DNA from: Lepidodermella squamata | Lineage: Eukaryota > Animalia > Gastrotricha | Reading direction: 5' to 3' | Assembly (NCBI GenBank): GCA_047495785.1 | Contig: JBLDXI010000007.1 | Coordinates: 4,340,001 to 4,404,000, forward strand | Length of the DNA stretch: 64,000 bases | In this document: piece after piece, positions 1 through 11,376 of the stretch | Layout: the number at the start of each line of letters is the position of its first letter | How positions within the stretch are numbered: position 1 is the stretch's first letter | Position numbers and translations under genes: made by a program | The notes under the pieces: generated by a model | Databases searched by the model: none | Told to the model about the DNA's origin: nothing | Seen by the model: the letters and a program-made list of their open reading frames with translations, nothing else

Positions 1-1211
1 AATTTGCGAGTACTTAACGCTTCACAACTATTTCACTTAGAAACTTAATCAAATCACCACCAGGTTTTTTTGGGTTTTTTCGTAAAACAAGATGCCCGTA
101 GCCTAGGACCAAATCCACGAAAATATCCTCAGGATATTATGGACCTCAGTTGACTCCATAATAGGTTCTATCCTTGAGTAAACACTGTAGGCGTATCCAT
201 AGCAATTAATACCTACAACACAACAGCCAAGTGCTGTCTATGTTTTTAGTATTTTTCTCTCGAATTACGGCTATTAACCGAATGTCCCGGGGCAGTCTCA
301 ATCGATCGAAATTAGGACCCACTTTGTTTATTTTCTGGCAAATACCTTCTCAAGCTTCGGGCACTTGTTGACAGAAAATTGCACTTGACACCGTGGTTTT
401 CTACCAATGTGCGTGTGCTTGTAAGCTATATCCGGTATTTGTAAACAAATTATAGCACGGGCAAATCGCTGATAAACATTCGAATTTTTTGAGATAGCCA
501 TCGCATTCACAATTTAGACTGTCAGTAACATTTTGTCCTCAAAGGTCATCTCAGCCTTTTCAGACTCTTCTGTGACCTCTGCCTTTTCACGCATTCAAGT
601 GCGCGGTGAAAAAATCCATTCACATAAAGCCGGCGGTTGGCTATTTTGTTTTTGCACTGCGTAGCCGGTGACATAGAGCCTTTGAGGCTATTTTCAGCTG
701 CCATCCTTCAGTCGCAGAATATTTCCCCGGAAAATTTTACCGGCATCATCCATTAATATTGTCCCATTTAATTCACGCTTACTCTACTCCCAGGATTCTG
801 CACAAGGGTTGGAATTCCCTGATTAAATTATAGTTCAACCTGTGCAAATTTACCTCAAACCAGTTAGCTATTCCAGAGAGCGAAGTACCACTAGGGATGG
901 TAGGGATCATCCCTACCAGTTCCATCGGTCCGTACGGTGAGCTCATTCAAAGACCAAAAGGGGGAGGGACCCTTATGTCGATTCTTGCGATCCTAACCAG
1001 TTCCGCGGCCCTAATACTTCGCTCTGTGTTTTATTCGAATCGAACAATTTTATTCCAATTAAATGTTGAGATTTTCTCTGCTACGGCACTGAGTTATGGT
1101 TTTGTAGAAATTATGATACTATTGAACTTATTTTTTTGCTGTCATTATGATGCTATGGTTCTTCAGATTTAATTTAATCCTTCCGTTTTTTGCAGACGAA
1201 TTATTAATCAA

Positions 1212-3635
1212 ATGATCGCAGTGCGTGGTTCCCGAGTGATCCCCTCCTGCCTCCTGTTCGCCCTCATTTTAGGCCAACCGCCTCTCAACAATGGCGAACA
1301 GCCACCACAAATAGATTTCAGCAAGCGGCATCACTCAGTGCCCCCATTATCAACATCAGCAAGTAGTGGAGCCCTCAATAAAATGCTCCAGCTCATCGAC
1401 GAAGGGGCTGACATCAACGAATTCGACTGGCTGGGCCAAACCGCGCTGCACATGGTCGCGAAATTCCAGCAGACAAAAGCAGCTAGACTGCTGTTAGAAC
1501 GCGGCGCGAATTGCTGCATAGCAAATGCTGATTTCGAAGAAACCCCGCTTCATCTAGCCGCGAAAACGGGGAGCCTAGCTATCATTCAAATGTTGATTGA
1601 CCGTGGGGCGAATGTGAATGCCCAGATTTCGAAGCAAATCCACCCTGGAGGCACGCCTTTCTTATACGGGGCCTACTACGACGGGAATTCATTCGCGACG
1701 GCCAAGTTACTGCTAGAAAACGGGGCTGATGTAACCCAGACCAATAGTTACGGCCAAACGGGGCTGCATCTCTACGTCGAACATTTGAATCTGAGAGCTG
1801 TGACGGTTATGGTTGGCCGATTCGGAGCTGATCCGAATATTCGAAACGAGGCAGGATGTACGCCGTTGAATATCTTAACTATGCAAGCCAACGAAAATAG
1901 GAACCATCCAAACCTAATTCAAATCGCGTCTTACCTGTTAGAAACCGGCGCTGCTGTCAATGCGAGATGTGCTGGGGAGAATGGCAGTAAGAGAACTCCT
2001 CTCCACAATGCGATTCTAAGCGAGAATCGAATTTTGGTAGATCTACTGTTGGAATACAGCGCTGATGTTAATGCCGTTGACAGGCGGGGCTACACCCCAC
2101 TCTATCTCGCAACTGTAGTTCGGGATAAAATCGATAGCGATTTGATCAGGGTTTTGCTGGAACACGGCGCGAATCCTAATACAGTAACCAGGGAGCTCCG
2201 AGCAGCTAATCCTTTCTGCAATTCCATTTTATCGAATTTCCTGCGGAAACGGCTTGAGGTTAACGAGGTGACGTCAGAGGTCGTGGCTCTACTTATTGGC
2301 CATGGTGCTGAGAAGGACCCTAACTGCCCGAATTACGAGTACGACGAAATAGGCCGGTACCTGCAGTTCCAACGCATGCCGACCAGTCCTCCGATCCAGA
2401 TATTGCCTGTGCTATTCCAATTCGAAGAAGGCGGTCCTGCGGAGTTGCCGCTCTACAACGAAAAAGCCGTTGCTGAGAAAATGCTGGTGAGCAAGGCGAT
2501 TCCCGACATTATTAAAGCGGCAAGCTTTGGCGACGCGGCTGGCATCATCAAAATATTCCAGCGTTTCAGTAATAACACGATGAAAATCGCCGAGTTCATC
2601 AACGAAAAGGACCAGTTTGGCAAAACTGCGCTGCATTGGTCGGCTGGTGGCGAGTATTTCATTGCGACAAGGACCTTGCTAAGGGGCGGAGCTTATGTTG
2701 AAGCCGAGGATAACGAGAATAACACCCCTCTAGTCTATGCAGCTGCGACTGGGAATGTCGAAATAATCAAACTGCTGCTGAGTTACGGAGCTCACGTCGC
2801 TGGAAATTCAGCCCTGAGACAAGCAGTGGATCGGTCGAATTCACCCGAGGCCGTTGAGATCTTACTACAGGCTGGGGCTTTCATCAACCCTAAGGAAGAG
2901 CCTTCTTTATTGCATCTTGCAACGATAAAGCAGAACATTCGAATGATGCAATTGCTCATACGGTACGGAGCGAATGTCAATGCAAAGGAGGCAACTCTGG
3001 GCCAGGCGCCGTTCAGCTATTTGCTGGAGTCTGACTGCTGCTATCCGCAATTGCCAGTCTTGAGTGTGCTCCTCGAGAATGGCGCTGATATCAACAGCAG
3101 AGATAACAGAGGCCGAACAGGTGAGCCAAAAGAAAAATCGGGGAAATATTGTGAGCGTCCTCCGTGACAGTTCAGCGATGAAAGAAATTTGAGTTACTAT
3201 CGCAAATTTATTTTTACGTTTTAATCCAGCCTTTGTTGAAATGTTCAATTCTATTCCTGTCCTATTTCAAATCCATTTTTATATTTTTCAGCCCTTTCCA
3301 TCGCAATCGAAGTGCGACGGCGAAAGGAGGTTGTTCGATTTCTAGTCGAGCACTACGCCGATGCGAACATTCCAGATGCTTACGGCTGCAACGCGCCGCT
3401 GTACCTACTCGTGCAGATGGCATCGCGCGAGGCGAACCGATTTCATTTACATTCCATCAGCTCAGTGGAGGACGACGCGGAGGTCGCGCAGATCGCGAAA
3501 GACCTCATCGAGTACGGCGCGTACTCGGACAAGCGAGACCCGTGCTCAGGCCTGACGCCGTATCAACTAGCTGTACGCCGCAACCTGCCAAAAACTTCTC
3601 AAACCATCATAGAACATATTTTATACAAAAGATGA
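1212..3635 (+). CDS. Ankyrin-repeat protein, 2 exons (1212-3120, 3292-3635), with a hydrophobic N-terminus
   Basis: Many G-x-T-[AP]-L-H ankyrin motifs (GQTALHMVA, ETPLHLAA, RTPLHNAI, GKTALHWSA, NTPLVYAA). The intron ACAG|gtgagc...ttttcag|CC joins the 651-aa ORF in frame to the 3312-3635 ORF, restoring GRTALSIAI. Confidence 0.9.
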
Positions 3636-4347: not shown

Positions 4348-5188
<841 letters not shown>

Positions 5189-5761
5189 ATAGACTTTCTA
5201 TAGGTACTTCAATAAAACATGTGTATCGATCAACAGATTTGTTCAATCGATATGGGCATTTCAGCTTTTTGAATTAAGAACTTTAGCGACTCCATACGGC
5301 TGGGAAGATAGGAATTGTGAGGCTTTGTAGATACTACTCGATCTGTTCTCCGCCGGCATGGTATCGCGAATTATTTCAACAAATTTCTAATAGAGATGAA
5401 AGGAGAAAAGCGAAAAATTGGATGCGGCTAAATATGGATCGCTTCCTTCTCCCACTGCATATGTCTCAAGTATGATTAGCCGAGATCTTTTCTCCAGTGT
5501 TTGCAGAAGGATGTTTTAATTTGTACCGCCAAAAACGTCAAACAGAGTGTTTCATAGTAATTAGAGAACTTCGCAACGTCAAGACTGCTTTATTTACCCA
5601 GAGCAAACCGACAAAAATTAGGAGTAATAACATAAAAATGAGTCTGTAAAGAGCATTGCTCAACGCCGTTCGGACTAAAAGTCTGCAAAATTAAACGCCG
5701 TTTTGATTACGGCTGACCTTACTGTTGAGTTGATGCCACCGTTATCAGCTAAATAGATCGC

Positions 5762-8700
5762 TTATGGAGCTTCTTGCGCCAAGAATCGAACTACTTCATT
5801 ATGGCGATTTCGAGATGCTATCCAAAGAGGAGTTCTGCCATCTCTATTTGCCGTAGAAACCGTAGCTGGCGCTTCCTTTGCCAGAAATCTGACAACTTGG
5901 ATGTGTCCATTCGCAGCCGCCCTCCAAAGCGGGGTTTTGCCGTTGTTATCGCGCGTAGCAAGACTGGCTGGTGCATCCTTCGCCAAGAATTGAACAACTG
6001 CTATGTGGCCATTTCGAGCCGCTATGCAGAGCGGGGTTGTGCCATCGTTGCAAGGCGTAGAAACAGTGGCCGGAGCTTTCTTCGCTAGGAATTTAACGAC
6101 TTCGATGTGCCCATTATGAGCGGCTGTCCAAAGCGGAGTTGCACCATCGTTGTCAGCCGCAAAAACCATACCTGGTGCTTCGATTGCCAGAAGTCGAACA
6201 ACTTCAATATGACCATTTGCAGCGGCTACCCAAAGCGGGGTTGTGCCGTAGTTATCAGGCGTAGAAATCGAAGCCGGGGCTTCTTGTGACAGGAATCTAA
6301 CAACTTCGAGGTGGCCATTCGCAGCGGCAATCTTGAGCGGAGTTGTGCCGTCTTTATCAGCAATAGAAATTGCGTATGGTGCTATGTTAGAAAGAAATCG
6401 AACAACTTCGACATGGCCATTCTGAGCTGCTTTCCAAAGTGGGCGTCTGCCTTTGTAATCAGCCACAGAAACGGTACCAGATGATTTTCCAGCCATGAAA
6501 GCTAATATTTCCAGGTCACCCTGAATCGCGGCTATTTCTGTTGCCGCGCTTGCCTCACTTGCGTTGAAATTGCGCTTTACTGCTTCTAAATCACGTTTCA
6601 AAACTGATCGAATGAACTCAGATGTAGTCTCCTTGCTGTTTTCGTGGTTATTCAAAGCCGTTCTTGCTTGATATTTCCAGTAGTGACCATGGAAGAAGTC
6701 CGCAATCTTGTCTCTCTCATCTTTCAGCATCTCCATTCAATCTTCGTCGAAAATTTGCATCAGGAAAGCCAGATCATTGTGTTCTGCTATGCATTTTATG
6801 TAATTTTGATTGTGATCTTGGTTTCCGTGCAGTCTGGTAAGTATCCAAGCAATCAGGCGATAGGAATAATGTGTTCCTTGTCTTCTGAACTCATCTCCTT
6901 CTGGCAGGCTGAAATTATCTTCCCAATCCAAGCCATAGAGAAAGTGGATGAAAGACTTGCCTCCACGTTTGCTTACGGACGTGCATGCTTCCAGCAATGC
7001 GTCGCAACTCAAATTCTCCAAGATATCGCGCAGCAGCCGCCGATGCACCGATTTGTGCTTTTGACTGTTAGCACCCTTGAAAAACTCGAACAGCATCATA
7101 TCGGCATTCGAATCAGTCCTTCCTTGCAGTAGAAACAGTCGAACTTTGTCATGAAGATCCGCATCATTTGAGGCCGTCATCCTAAATTCTTCAGCAGCTC
7201 GGCGAAAACCTGCTTCCCAAAGCAGTTGATGCACGGACGAGAGCTCATATTCTCCACCAACTGTTCTTATGACAGCCCGCTGATCGAATGCGTTGAAGAC
7301 GTCCTTTGCCCTAAGGTTGGGTGCCAACTGGAGCCAAAGCATCGTTAGATATTCGGCAGGAATCAGAGTGTTTGGCTCGAAAAGTAAGTAGGCATAAAAG
7401 CATAGTCTGTACGTTTTGCCGAATCGCTCAAAAGTAAACTGCAACAGACCATCGACGGTTTGCTCATTAAAGCGCGGATCGCCACCGGCTATAACAGTGT
7501 CGAAGTCGTTGGTCTTACGATTGACTAACTCTTCATACTCCTCGTCCCAATCGTAATTACCGAAAAGAAAGCGGTTAGCAACGAGAGACATGATCAGGGG
7601 CAAGCCGCAGCATATTTCAGCGAGCTTACCTATCTTTTCCACGGCGTTCGTCTTGAATTTCTTCTTCAAGTCGCACGTCGTATCGAGATACTGTTCAATG
7701 GCTGCATTTTCGAGACTATCAATTTTCGCCAACTTGTAGATGAGTTGCCGCTGTTGCATTAAAATCGGATAAGGGTCACGCGTGATGACGCAGCAGGACA
7801 TTTCCGATTGCTCTTGCACAAAGAAGCGAAGCAATTCCACGTTGAACATGTCATCGAGGACGACGAGAACACGATGGCGTTTTTTGTCTCGGAAATACTC
7901 GCTGATATGAGACAACTCAGATCCGGTGAATTCCGCGGCGGCTTTCTTTGCCAGGGCCAATAGGCTTTCACGGAATTCTTTCTTGGCTGAGTCGTCGAAA
8001 GTTGGCCCTTGCCATTTGAAACACTGCAGCCAAAGCACAACTGTCGGTGACTGCAGTCCTCTGGGTACATTTTCGCTACACAGTAATTTTGCGATCAACA
8101 CCGATTTTCCAACACCTCCCTCGCCAGCCACAACCAGAAGACTCGCAAAGCCTACGAAGAGTGAGATATAAGCGATTTTCAGCTATGAGGCTTTCTCTAT
8201 GCTTAAGAACTATTCGCTTCCTTCAAATGCTCAAAAAGTAGGGCTGATCTGTTGCTCGATTCCCAATGATGGTTTAAGCGATAAGAATAAGAAAACATAC
8301 CTTTGGCCGGTTTGTTGCAAATTTCGATCAAATGGTTTATCATTTTGTTCTCGAGTTCGTGCCGCTCGAAATAGTTCGCAATGCTGATAGGTATGCTTGG
8401 AGCGTAAAATCGATTCAGAACAACGGCTTTCTGAGCCGGCATTTTCAGTATCAGCCGGATTTGCTGGCAAATATCATTTGCATCGTCGTGGAAGTGCATG
8501 GCCTCCGTGCGCAAAAAAATGCGAAGCAGATTGCCAAGGTTGCGAGATTCGCCAAGTTGGACGAAGCTGTCTTCCAAATTTACGAGGAGGACGTTCTTCT
8601 TCTTGAAAATGGCATAGTCGAACTCCTTAGCTGAATTGGAACCATTGCGTAAGTACGGCAGACTCAGGAAGCAAACAACGATATCTGCCCAGTCGACTTT

Positions 8701-9339
8701 CTGTTTTTTGAGAACAGCCTTGAAATATCGTGAGAAATTTCAAGGTAGGGCTGGGATGAATTTACCTCCATCATTGCTTGATCAAGATCACCGCAAATGT
8801 TATGGACATCAAGGAAAACATCGAAGTCCGGTTGCTTGCTGAGATATTCATCAGAGACCCTGCGTACGTCATCCTCCCGAAAGCTCCACGAATAGCTTAC
8901 AAACACACGAGCGTTTTTAATAGCAGCAGCGGATTCATCTAAGGAAGCGGCCTTAATTAGCGCAATACAATTTTGGTTGAAAACATAATAAATATGGTTG
9001 GTAAAGATTAATTAACCGTTAATCGATATTCGGCTAATTCAACTGGCTTGGGGGATGCTGTTTTGCGGGCTTGGGCAAATGCAGAGACTGTCTCACATGC
9101 CTTTCGATGGCCCATGGCGGGAAAGAGCTCCCTGATGTCGTCTTTTGTTAGGAGGGCTATACTGAATTCATCCAGCTCATTAGCTGTAAAACCAATGCAA
9201 AAAATAAGGTTCTCTGACATGAAAAATCGAAGATAAGAAACACCAGCTCACCAGTGAAAACGTCGCACAGGCGAGACTGATGGTCGGGATTGGCAATACC
9301 CGCGTCGAAGACCAACTTCCCGAGTGCAGCTTGGTCCAT
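5762..9339 (-). CDS. NLR-like STAND protein SAM-TIR-NB-ARC-ankyrin; exons 9339-9252, 9183-9017, 8951-8766, 8718-8301, 8151-5762; one in-frame TGA at 6739-6737
   Basis: SAM-like FTANELDEFSIALLTKDDIRELFPAMGHR. TIR: VFVSYSW, DVFLDV, ADIVVCFLSLPYL, SAKEFDYA. NB-ARC: Walker A GEGGVGKS, Walker B VLVVLDDM, VITRD, CCGLPL. Seven 34-aa ankyrin repeats. Exon lengths sum to 3249 nt (1083 codons). Confidence 0.82.
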
Positions 9340-10029
9340 CCCACTTGCGGCGACAGTTAGGTGGCTCCGTTAAGTAAATTATCAATACATCTAATGTCAA
9401 GAGATTGAACCATAGAAAAGGCTGGTGATTAAAGTAGTTAGAACTAGTATCTGGCGCTGTAATGTATTTACGCTACTATCAAAAAATGAAGGCAATGTCA
9501 AATGTAAATGAAACCAAGCAATCTTGTTGCTATGATAAGCAGAAGCCTTCTGAGAACCTTGGCTGCTGAAGCACTTTAATGTTAAAGCCTACAACTAGTT
9601 TTTCATTTAAGCTACTGCTGTTACCTTTGGCCATTCACATGTTTTACACTATTTGACATGAACGTGCACGTATTTTCGCGTTAACGTTAACTAAACCTGA
9701 ATAAATAATATTCATGGTAACAGAATGTAAATGTCGAATGAAGGTAATATTTTAATTTCGAATTCAAAATTTTTGTTTTCATAACCGCTCGAGATGCACC
9801 GAACATTCGAATGAGCTTGAATGCAGGTATTTTTGATCCTGCTTCGACCACGCCGGTTCATAGCCTCCGAATATTCTTTATTTATATAAAATATATAACA
9901 GATTTTAAACGATAATTTGTATTTTTAGCAATATAAAGGGAATAATTCGACCGTTGGGGGGAAAAGCGATGAAATCAGAGCTTAAGAAAACTAATAATAT
10001 AAATTGTCCTCAATGTTCGGCCCCTCGTT

Positions 10030-11376
10030 TCAGGCCTGAGCTGGCGGAACCAAGTATGGCAGAGCTTCGTTAGCCTCATTTTTGCGATACTCAACGCCGT
10101 AGTCCTTGTACCGCAACACATCATTTCGCAGGTAAATGAACGTATCGTAGTAGATATGGCGAAAGTGCTTCGGGTACATCCCATCAACCTCAGGGCACAT
10201 CTCGTGGTAGCAATTGCCGACGAGAATTTCCAGCTCAGTCAACGGGAAGTACTGCTTCATCTCTTCCTCGGTCATCGTCAGCATTCTCAGCAGCTCCTGG
10301 GACCAGTGGGCTTGGAACTTGGCCACGTCTTGCTGCATCTCCTCCTCGGATGGCAATTTAGCCTTGCCCTTGATCAACATGCAAATGAACTCGGACTGGG
10401 GTCTCAGGTGGTACAGCCCAGCGATGTTCGCCTTGCCAAGGATGAAGAGCTTTTGGCATCTAGGGTGGACGAGATGCTTGTAGAGCGGGAACAGAAAACG
10501 GCCAAGCGAACCCAGCGCCTCGAAGTCCAATTTCAAATCCTCAGCCAACGGTAGGCTGGGCTTGAAACCGGAGCAGAAAATCACGACATCGTATTCACCA
10601 CTCGTACCATCCGCGAAATGAGCCGTGTTTCCCTCGGCCGAAACTAGGCTGGTATGTAGGGCCATATTTGGGAGGGACTTGCACCAAAGAGGCGGGATAG
10701 CGTTGTAGCAACAGTCCATACTTTTAGCCCTGCCTGGTTTGCTCAGCAAGATAGCCATGTCCATCGCGCCCCAAGAGCTTCCAACAATCAAAACCCGTTT
10801 ATCCTTGATGCGAGCCGGGTCTCTCAGCGAGTGGTAGTGGAAATGCTCGCCAGTGAACTTCGACATATCAACGTCAGGAGTGCGAGGGACAGTGTACTGG
10901 CCATTGCATAGCAAGACGTAGTCGCTGGTCTCATCAGTCGATCCGCCGGTCTTCAAATCGTGCAGTTTGAAAGAGAATTTCTGCGTCGCCTTATCAAAGC
11001 TGATGTTAGTGACCTGTCGATTGAATTGAATGTACTTTTCAAGCTGGAATTTCGTCGCAAAGTCGAGGAAGTATTTGTAGGTCTCCTCTCGTGTTGGGTA
11101 GACATGCGTTCCAGGCGGGAAGTCGTGCTCCGGATGCGGCTGGTGCAGCAGGGTCGGCGTGTTCATTTGAAGCTCGCGGTAGACGGTCGTGTTCATCGGC
11201 TGGCCGGCTACGTCGTACGTCTCCGGTCTGTCGGCCATGAATACCCACTCGCCGCCGAGTTCGGCGCGCCGCTCGTAGCAAACGAATTCAACGCCATCGG
11301 CTTCGACGTGTTTCTGCAGCGATCGCAGGGAAATCAGGCCACCAGGACCAGCGCCAACAATCACAACTTTAACCAT
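10030..11376 (-). CDS. Flavin-containing monooxygenase (class B FMO family), intronless, 448 aa
   Basis: FAD-binding GAGPGG, ERRAELGGEW, LCNGQYTVP, FMO fingerprint variant FTGEHFHYHSL, second dinucleotide motif LIVGSSWGA, and DVVIFCSGF. Confidence 0.9.
   Translation of the reverse strand: MVKVVIVGAGPGGLISLRSLQKHVEADGVEFVCYERRAELGGEWVFMADRPETYDVAGQPMNTTVYRELQMNTPTLLHQPHPEHDFPPGTHVYPTREETYKYFLDFATKFQLEKYIQFNRQVTNISFDKATQKFSFKLHDLKTGGSTDETSDYVLLCNGQYTVPRTPDVDMSKFTGEHFHYHSLRDPARIKDKRVLIVGSSWGAMDMAILLSKPGRAKSMDCCYNAIPPLWCKSLPNMALHTSLVSAEGNTAHFADGTSGEYDVVIFCSGFKPSLPLAEDLKLDFEALGSLGRFLFPLYKHLVHPRCQKLFILGKANIAGLYHLRPQSEFICMLIKGKAKLPSEEEMQQDVAKFQAHWSQELLRMLTMTEEEMKQYFPLTELEILVGNCYHEMCPEVDGMYPKHFRHIYYDTFIYLRNDVLRYKDYGVEYRKNEANEALPYLVPPAQA

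Follow-up and report, generated by a model that had tools for sequence, protein, structure and literature searches.

Does the gastrotrich Lepidodermella squamata encode an NLR-like receptor in which a SAM domain, a TIR domain, an NB-ARC ATPase and ankyrin repeats follow one another in a single protein? The question is raised by a minus-strand gene in a 64,000-nucleotide (nt) stretch of contig JBLDXI010000007.1 (positions 4,340,001 to 4,404,000; hereafter the window), for which a preliminary description had proposed this unusual architecture. TIR domains with NAD+-destroying activity are at work in the resistance proteins of plants, in the anti-phage defence of bacteria and in the axon death driven by SARM1; the effectors of animal NLRs are normally death-fold domains. 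A TIR-NB-ARC-ankyrin design was found at the locus and in its family, but in the assembled copy a stop codon stands before the sensor, and the SAM assignment is weak. On balance, the locus is probably a member of a lineage-specific animal family of the STAND/NLR type, with the order TIR-NB-ARC-helical-ankyrin and additional SAM-like 5' exons, and its truncation in this copy, as an allele or a pseudogene, is most likely recent.

Domain content of the receptor gene

The profile, sequence, feature and fold searches were all run on single exons. The NB-ARC profile of Pfam was matched above its gathering score (E = 2e-7, 31.0 bits versus 23.5), and the motifs of an NB-ARC ATPase could be followed along the fifth exon: a P-loop GEGGVGKS (8102-8125), a Walker B stretch VLVVLDD, VITRD, GLPL (7595-7606) and VHQ (7226-7234). 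In an alignment of the window protein with eight relatives (alignment A4), the residues G, G, K, D and P of these motifs were invariant. The preliminary description had taken VHQ for the equivalent of the MHD motif; as shown by the same alignment, VHQ occupied the MHD column, alongside the LHD, LHG, VHD and IHQ of Apaf-1-like proteins, which bears out that assignment. The ankyrin part was matched by Pfam Ank (5.5e-46, with seven stretches) and Ank_2 (4.3e-54). Thus, both the NB-ARC domain and the seven ankyrin repeats of the earlier proposal were recovered by profile search.

The evidence for the TIR domain was divided between exons 3 and 4. The top Pfam match of exon 4 was TIR_2 (E = 0.13, 13.2 bits, profile positions 49-112; below threshold), and the top named clusters of this exon in the ESM Atlas were all TIR_2 (0.90 and 0.89). 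Exon 3 alone gave no direct Pfam match to TIR. According to tblastn, exon 3 was 40% identical to positions 2368-2508 of the metagenome contig L004 (E = 2e-8), and this homologous exon was matched by Pfam TIR_2 (3.1e-6, 28.1 bits versus a cutoff of 28) over profile positions 1-45. Since the match of exon 4 covers positions 49-112 and that of the exon 3 homologue positions 1-45, the two exons tile the TIR_2 profile. The TIR domain of the proposal was therefore recovered by profile search only indirectly: the homologous L004 exon passed the Pfam TIR_2 cutoff, but the exons of the gene itself stayed below it.

Searches against the PDB pointed in the same direction for the N-terminal half of the domain. 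A profile of this half (A3, five sequences) retrieved mostly TIR/SEFIR chains, with 7uxr at E = 0.015 and PdTIR at 0.058, followed by RRS1, AbTIR and SARM1. With the profile of the C-terminal half (A2), no significant match was obtained in the PDB; the second-best entry was a Cat1 TIR chain with E = 0.36. When exons 2, 3 and 4 were used singly in the PDB sequence search, nothing relevant was returned; an AlphaFold model of exon 4, made from a 5-row alignment, had a predicted local distance difference test score (pLDDT) of 60 and gave no Foldseek match in the PDB.

The glutamate that had been placed at the position of the catalytic motif was present in exon 4 within the string SNSAKEFDYA, and it was invariant in the five family sequences (E26 in A2). 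In NAD+-cleaving TIRs the catalytic glutamate follows the strand C / helix C motif. SAKE aligned with the C.KE, C.RE and C.NE of four relatives, and in the Cat1 TIR chain the glutamate had its counterpart in the segment WCWDELE; where the classical motif has W-C, the gene has S-A. From this conserved residue, an enzymatic TIR is plausible.

Relatives and phylogeny

Relatives were very scarce: an exhaustive search of 1.84 billion representative proteins yielded 22 of them at E ≤ 0.001. None was below 1e-30, and the best was at 1.6e-18 with 28% identity. In a word-indexed protein search, the NB-ARC exon found no match, and one of the relatives (P0004) used as a query matched only itself. Neither the protein itself nor a paralog was among the 22 relatives, which indicates that the proteins of this organism are absent from the searched libraries; no receptor paralogs were found inside the 64-kb window either. 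The nearer relatives were NB-ARC-ankyrin proteins, several of which open with the C-terminal half of a TIR domain, and P0017 was a TIR_2-NB-ARC protein. The metagenome contigs of the relatives carry eukaryotic genes, namely a 7tm_1 G protein-coupled receptor, a protein kinase, CEP104, a Ddi2-like gene and a G-alpha gene.

A maximum-likelihood phylogeny computed from 19 NB-ARC regions (the fragments P0012, P0013, P0014 and P0021 being left out) was in line with this picture. The window sequence grouped with eight TIR/NB-ARC/ANK relatives at 100/100 support, and the NB-ARC/APAF1_C/WD40 proteins formed a separate second group; the NB-ARC phylogeny that the preliminary description had called for thus places the gene within a clade of TIR/NB-ARC/ANK proteins.

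Domain order was also shared. In P0004, P0014, P0017 and P0001, one open reading frame (ORF) spans the C-terminal half of the TIR domain, the linker and the P-loop, and the exon 4 linker is collinear with these relatives. P0001, the closest relative, is moreover collinear with the window gene over the NB-ARC domain, the helical region and the start of the ankyrin repeats. The unannotated TIR-NB-ARC-ankyrin genes of the metagenome contigs (P0001/P0023, P0003, P0004+P0013, P0007, P0014 and P0017) have the same domain order, the same intron position in the TIR domain and the same TIR glutamate. They differ from the window gene in sequence (20-29% identity), in having the TIR domain at their start, without a SAM-like leader, and in having no stop at the NB-ARC/ankyrin boundary.

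Two of the related loci showed breaks of another kind. At L005 (4796-8109), a gap of 12 nt separates the end of the TIR_2-NB-ARC ORF (P0017) from a 599-codon ORF with the remaining NB-ARC and the ankyrin repeats, and a similar break of 147 nt was seen in L003. Both are probably introns inside the NB-ARC domain, where the window gene is continuous.

Exon structure of the gene

The gene coordinates given in the preliminary description, 5762-9339, proved exact, corresponding to a minus-strand ATG at 9339 and a TAA at 5764-5762. The proposal of five exons in one frame held as far as the predicted splice sites are concerned, since a five-exon model with GT..AG introns and a shared frame was obtained (Table 1), but this frame is broken by a TGA at codon 743. 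With codons numbered from the exon coordinates, this TGA and the terminal TAA are the two stops within the model. The four introns are all of the GT..AG type, with lengths of 68, 92 (or 65 with an alternative donor of exon 2), 65 and 149 nt, and the exon phases and GT..AG sites are mutually compatible across the model; exon 5 as a whole runs from 8151 to 5762 on the minus strand.

Homology supported two of the junctions. Joining exons 4 and 5 restores the motif C..P..G.L.V.G..G.GK, which is uninterrupted in P0004 and P0017, so that this splice is supported by relatives with an uninterrupted ORF. Exon 3 ends at the same residue as the L004 exon (MEE, then gt), and hence the position of the TIR intron is shared.

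Differences between the window and the contigs of the public run X1 agreed with the exon model. Indels were located in the predicted introns 3 and 4 as well as in the 3' untranslated region, and a single composite indel, 3 bases being lost, lay in coding sequence. Over 8491-9433, the X1 differences listed lay almost entirely outside the predicted exons, and all the indels listed there fell in intron 3. In codons 155-311, eight of the nine X1 differences listed were synonymous; of the haplotype differences listed for the gene, exon 1 held one, and several stood just upstream of it or in intron 1.

The SAM-like leader

The presence of a SAM domain was the part of the earlier proposal that the profile search did not recover. 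With each exon searched alone, exons 1 and 2 gave no SAM match by Pfam, by PDB sequence search or by Foldseek. The SAM-like region is interrupted by intron 1 and was thus searched in two separate halves. The AlphaFold model of exon 2 alone had a pLDDT of 74 and consisted of two helices, and it gave no Foldseek match. The signs of a SAM module came from the ESM Atlas features of exon 2, SAM_NCD1 (0.86 and 0.84) and SAM_1/SAM_2 (0.79), scores that lie below the 0.9 line of the tool and are to be read as a lead; four of the five best named clusters were SAM families. In addition, the leader carries the pattern F(T)A.ELD.....LT.DDI.EL....GHRK, which we take to fit the consensus of SAM helices 2-5, its LT.DDI.EL....GHRK part presumably corresponding to about helices 3-5.

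It is accordingly possible, with a minor but real share of the probability, that the two 5' exons are not SAM or are foreign to the gene, and that the locus encodes a plain TIR-NB-ARC-ankyrin protein with a short unrelated leader. Besides the negative searches and the ESM score of 0.86 under the 0.9 line, this would agree with L003, L004 and P0017, which have no SAM ahead of the TIR domain, and with an in-frame ATG at 9220 that might serve as another start if intron 1 were retained. Against it stand the family names of the ESM clusters and the helix pattern, which together make the SAM identity of the leader a lead. The structure of the gene speaks against the foreign origin of these exons as well. 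Exon 3 has no ATG before the TIR domain, whereas in L003 and L004 an ATG immediately precedes this domain; an upstream exon is therefore needed to supply the start codon, and the phases and GT..AG sites fit the upstream exons. The two exons probably belong to the receptor gene, whatever their fold.

The in-frame TGA before the ankyrin repeats

The NB-ARC ORF (8131-6737) closes with a TGA at 6739-6737, and it is followed at once, in the same frame, by the initial ATG of the ankyrin ORF (324 codons). A single uninterrupted ORF through effector, NOD and repeats is found in P0001 and not in the window gene; at codon 743, the frame is also open in the sister contig of run X1 described below. According to BLASTP, P0001 aligns up to the LTEIF before the stop (about residue 586) and again from residue 7 after it (about residue 597), so that only about 10 residues of P0001 separate its two aligned parts. 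With P0001 collinear on both sides, the TGA sits within ancestrally continuous sequence.

Two explanations of the stop were rejected. A small intron removing the TGA was ruled out, since the sequence from the last conserved NB-ARC codons down to the stop contains no GT and since P0001 is collinear across the site. An alternative genetic code or selenocysteine was ruled out as well: in the window TGA is a normal stop, terminating an FMO-like gene and long channel ORFs, and the sister copy described below has glycine at the position.

The only contig of run X1 over position 6739 reads A>C on the plus strand, that is, GGA (glycine) on the minus strand. Further differences between this contig and the window were seen at 6702, 6729 and 6743, together with a frame-keeping 3-base deletion at 6626-6629, and the contig therefore represents a sister copy and not the haplotype of the window. 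The sister copy belongs either to the other haplotype or to a very similar paralog. Past the TGA, the 324 codons are intact and the seven strong ankyrin repeats are retained, from which it follows that the nonsense change is recent, if real. This copy is thus probably a recently truncated allele or a young pseudogene.

A rather unlikely alternative is that the gene is intact, that the TGA arose as a base error during assembly or whole-genome amplification, and that a SAM-like/TIR/NB-ARC/ankyrin protein of about 1,067 residues is made. The GGA of the sole public-run contig over the position would fit this, as would the fact that nothing else is broken in the 1,068 codons and that seven strong repeats follow the stop. 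However, the GGA contig is another copy, as its additional differences show. Moreover, single-base substitutions are rare in modern consensus assemblies, and nonsense alleles are common in fast-evolving receptor families; both count against an error.

A split receptor, in which the TGA is functional and a SAM-like/TIR/NB-ARC protein works in trans with a separate ankyrin protein started at ATG 6736, or in which the stop is read through, is highly improbable. In its favour, the ATG directly follows the TGA in the same frame, the stop lies in the last exon, so that exon-junction-dependent mRNA decay need not remove the transcript, and plants have functional repeat-less TIR-NB proteins (PMC8635717). 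Against it, the methionine after the stop is part of the ancestral continuous sequence (Gly-Met in the sister copy, continuous in P0001) and no relative is split at this point. Moreover, eukaryotic ribosomes reinitiate with very low efficiency once they have translated an ORF of 742 codons, and UGA followed by A is not known as a leaky context.

Points against a truncated member of a receptor family

Several observations weigh against the reading of the preliminary description or against the favoured reading of the locus as a recently truncated member of a SAM-like/TIR-NB-ARC-ankyrin family. As to the former, the assembled copy cannot make the full four-part protein, a premature stop preceding the ankyrin sensor, and it yields at best a 742-residue SAM-like/TIR/NB-ARC protein without the sensor. 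The weakness of the SAM identity, with no match for exons 1 and 2 in the searches described above, and the TIR match of the gene's own exons below the Pfam threshold count against both. At position 6739, the window's own haplotype was absent among the run contigs covering the stretch; an assembly or amplification error behind the TGA is the less likely explanation, and the GGA contig may be a paralog and not an allele.

The transcript data add to these points. No public run on record as RNA contains the stretch, and neither a splice junction nor expression of this copy was found in the public runs. In run X2 (presumed RNA, under a different organism label), no splice joint was found over 5650-9450; its contigs of 94-160 nt gave partial matches, many of them switching strand, and look like inverted chimeras or paralog fragments that are unusable as transcript evidence. 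Run X3 held nothing matching the stretch. Finally, one X1 contig was about 14% divergent over 7193-7596 and carried a 2-base insertion in the NB-ARC coding sequence at 7493. This contig probably stems from a family paralog with a frameshift, which means that broken family copies exist and that contig mapping mixes paralogs.

Feature coordinates and neighbouring genes

The features of the receptor gene are collected in Table 1.

Table 1. Positions of the parts of the receptor gene in the window
Feature	Position	Strand	Description
Whole gene	ATG 9339 to TAA 5764-5762	minus	Five-exon model, 1,068 codons
Exon 1	9252..9339	minus	ATG 9339-9337, 29 codons + 1 base; first half of SAM-like leader; donor GT 9251-9250
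Exon 2	9044..9183	minus	Second half of SAM-like leader with DDIRELFPAMGHRK motif; acceptor ttttacag 9185-9184, donor GT 9043-9042
Exon 2, alternative donor	9016, extends exon to 9017	minus	Phase 0, like main donor
Exon 3	8766..8951	minus	Linker and candidate TIR N-terminal half, VFVSYSW (strand A) to DVFLD (strand B)
Exon 4	8301..8700	minus	Candidate TIR C-terminal half and linker to NB-ARC; conserved Glu codon gag 8625-8623 in SNSAKEFDYA
Exon 5, first part	6740..8151	minus	NB-ARC ATPase, winged-helix, helical extension
In-frame TGA stop, codon 743	6737..6739	minus	Between NB-ARC module and ankyrin part
Exon 5, second part, same frame	5765..6736	minus	324 codons: linker of about 90 residues, then seven ankyrin repeats; opens with ATG
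Terminal TAA stop	5762..5764	minus	Sequence read

The window has a GC content of 42-45%. On the plus strand, a 664-codon ankyrin-rich ORF at 1173-3167 was matched by Pfam Ank (7e-62) and Ank_2 (1e-57); it has no NB-ARC and is weakly similar to the ankyrin part of the receptor. At 10030-11376 on the minus strand lies a single-exon FMO-like flavin monooxygenase gene of 448 amino acid residues (Pfam FMO-like, 2.8e-30), whose TGA end is 690 nt upstream of the receptor ATG. Just downstream of the 3' end of the receptor gene, at 4348-5117 on the plus strand, short ORFs resemble the exons of a putative EF-hand calcyphosin-like calcium-binding protein.

Proposed mechanism

By analogy with plant TNLs, Apaf-1 and SARM1, the ankyrin array of the intact form would sense a ligand and keep the NB-ARC domain in an ADP-bound off state. 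Nucleotide exchange would then lead to oligomerisation of the intact receptor, and oligomerisation would bring the TIR domains together. The clustered TIR domains, via the conserved glutamate, might hydrolyse NAD+ or might serve as a signalling scaffold. The SAM-like leader, if real, could add a second self-association surface, comparable to the SAM ring of SARM1. A bolder version of this scheme, which we consider improbable, holds that leader and TIR_2-type TIR would jointly act as a self-assembling unit that destroys NAD+ in the manner of SARM1, under the control of NB-ARC and ankyrin repeats, and that the truncated copy would be a natural sensor-less form, comparable to plant TIR-NB proteins.

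A spiralian-type animal family of TIR-NB-ARC-ankyrin proteins, possibly including a SAM oligomeriser, would mean that the logic of plant TNLs was invented a second time, independently, and the question whether animals have NAD+ depletion gated by NLRs could be approached there with good prospects. What the present locus adds to such a family is a subtype that may bear SAM, together with a copy in which a nonsense codon is fresh. The latter fits the birth-and-death turnover that is typical of immune receptor families, and it makes this copy a weaker subject for functional work than intact paralogs.

Comparison with known systems

In a limited literature search, no publication describing a SAM-TIR-NB-ARC-ankyrin protein was found. 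The combination is nonetheless less unprecedented than the preliminary description implied, since an amphioxus homologue of Apaf-1/CED-4 with a TIR domain before the NB-ARC has been reported and likened to plant R genes (Zmasek et al., 2007, PMC2246300). Compared by description only, the amphioxus TIR-NB-ARC proteins differ from the window gene in having WD40, TPR or no repeats in place of ankyrin, and no SAM is mentioned for them (PMC2246300). The fungal NB-ARC/NACHT-ankyrin NLRs resemble it in that the C-terminal sensor of their STAND ATPase consists of ankyrin repeats (Dyrka et al., 2014, PMC4986451). They have other sets of N-terminal effectors and belong to another kingdom, and none was among the 22 sequence relatives.

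The SAM ring and the TIR NADase of SARM1 have been reviewed (PMC8635717). Like SARM1, the window gene would have a SAM module, a candidate one here, directly N-terminal of a TIR_2-type TIR with the glutamate, and SARM1 chains appeared at E of about 0.8 in the search with the N-half profile. In contrast to SARM1, it has no ARM domain and one candidate SAM-like unit instead of two, its TIR is followed by NB-ARC and ankyrin repeats, and bacterial TIRs score better. The gene does not have the form of a SARM1 orthologue: the 690 nt between its ATG and the FMO-like gene leave no room for ARM exons, and the TIR is not its last domain.

Plant TNLs differ from the window gene in their repeats, which are ankyrin here, with no LRR match by Pfam and without a C-JID/post-LRR part, and in lacking the extra SAM-like leader; the window gene is that of an animal, and the likeness holds at the level of Pfam domains only. 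At that level the two have in common a TIR at the N-terminus (a candidate one in the window gene) in which the glutamate is conserved, a C-terminal repeat sensor, and between them an NB-ARC that carries the P-loop, Walker B and GLPL motifs besides an MHD-like one.

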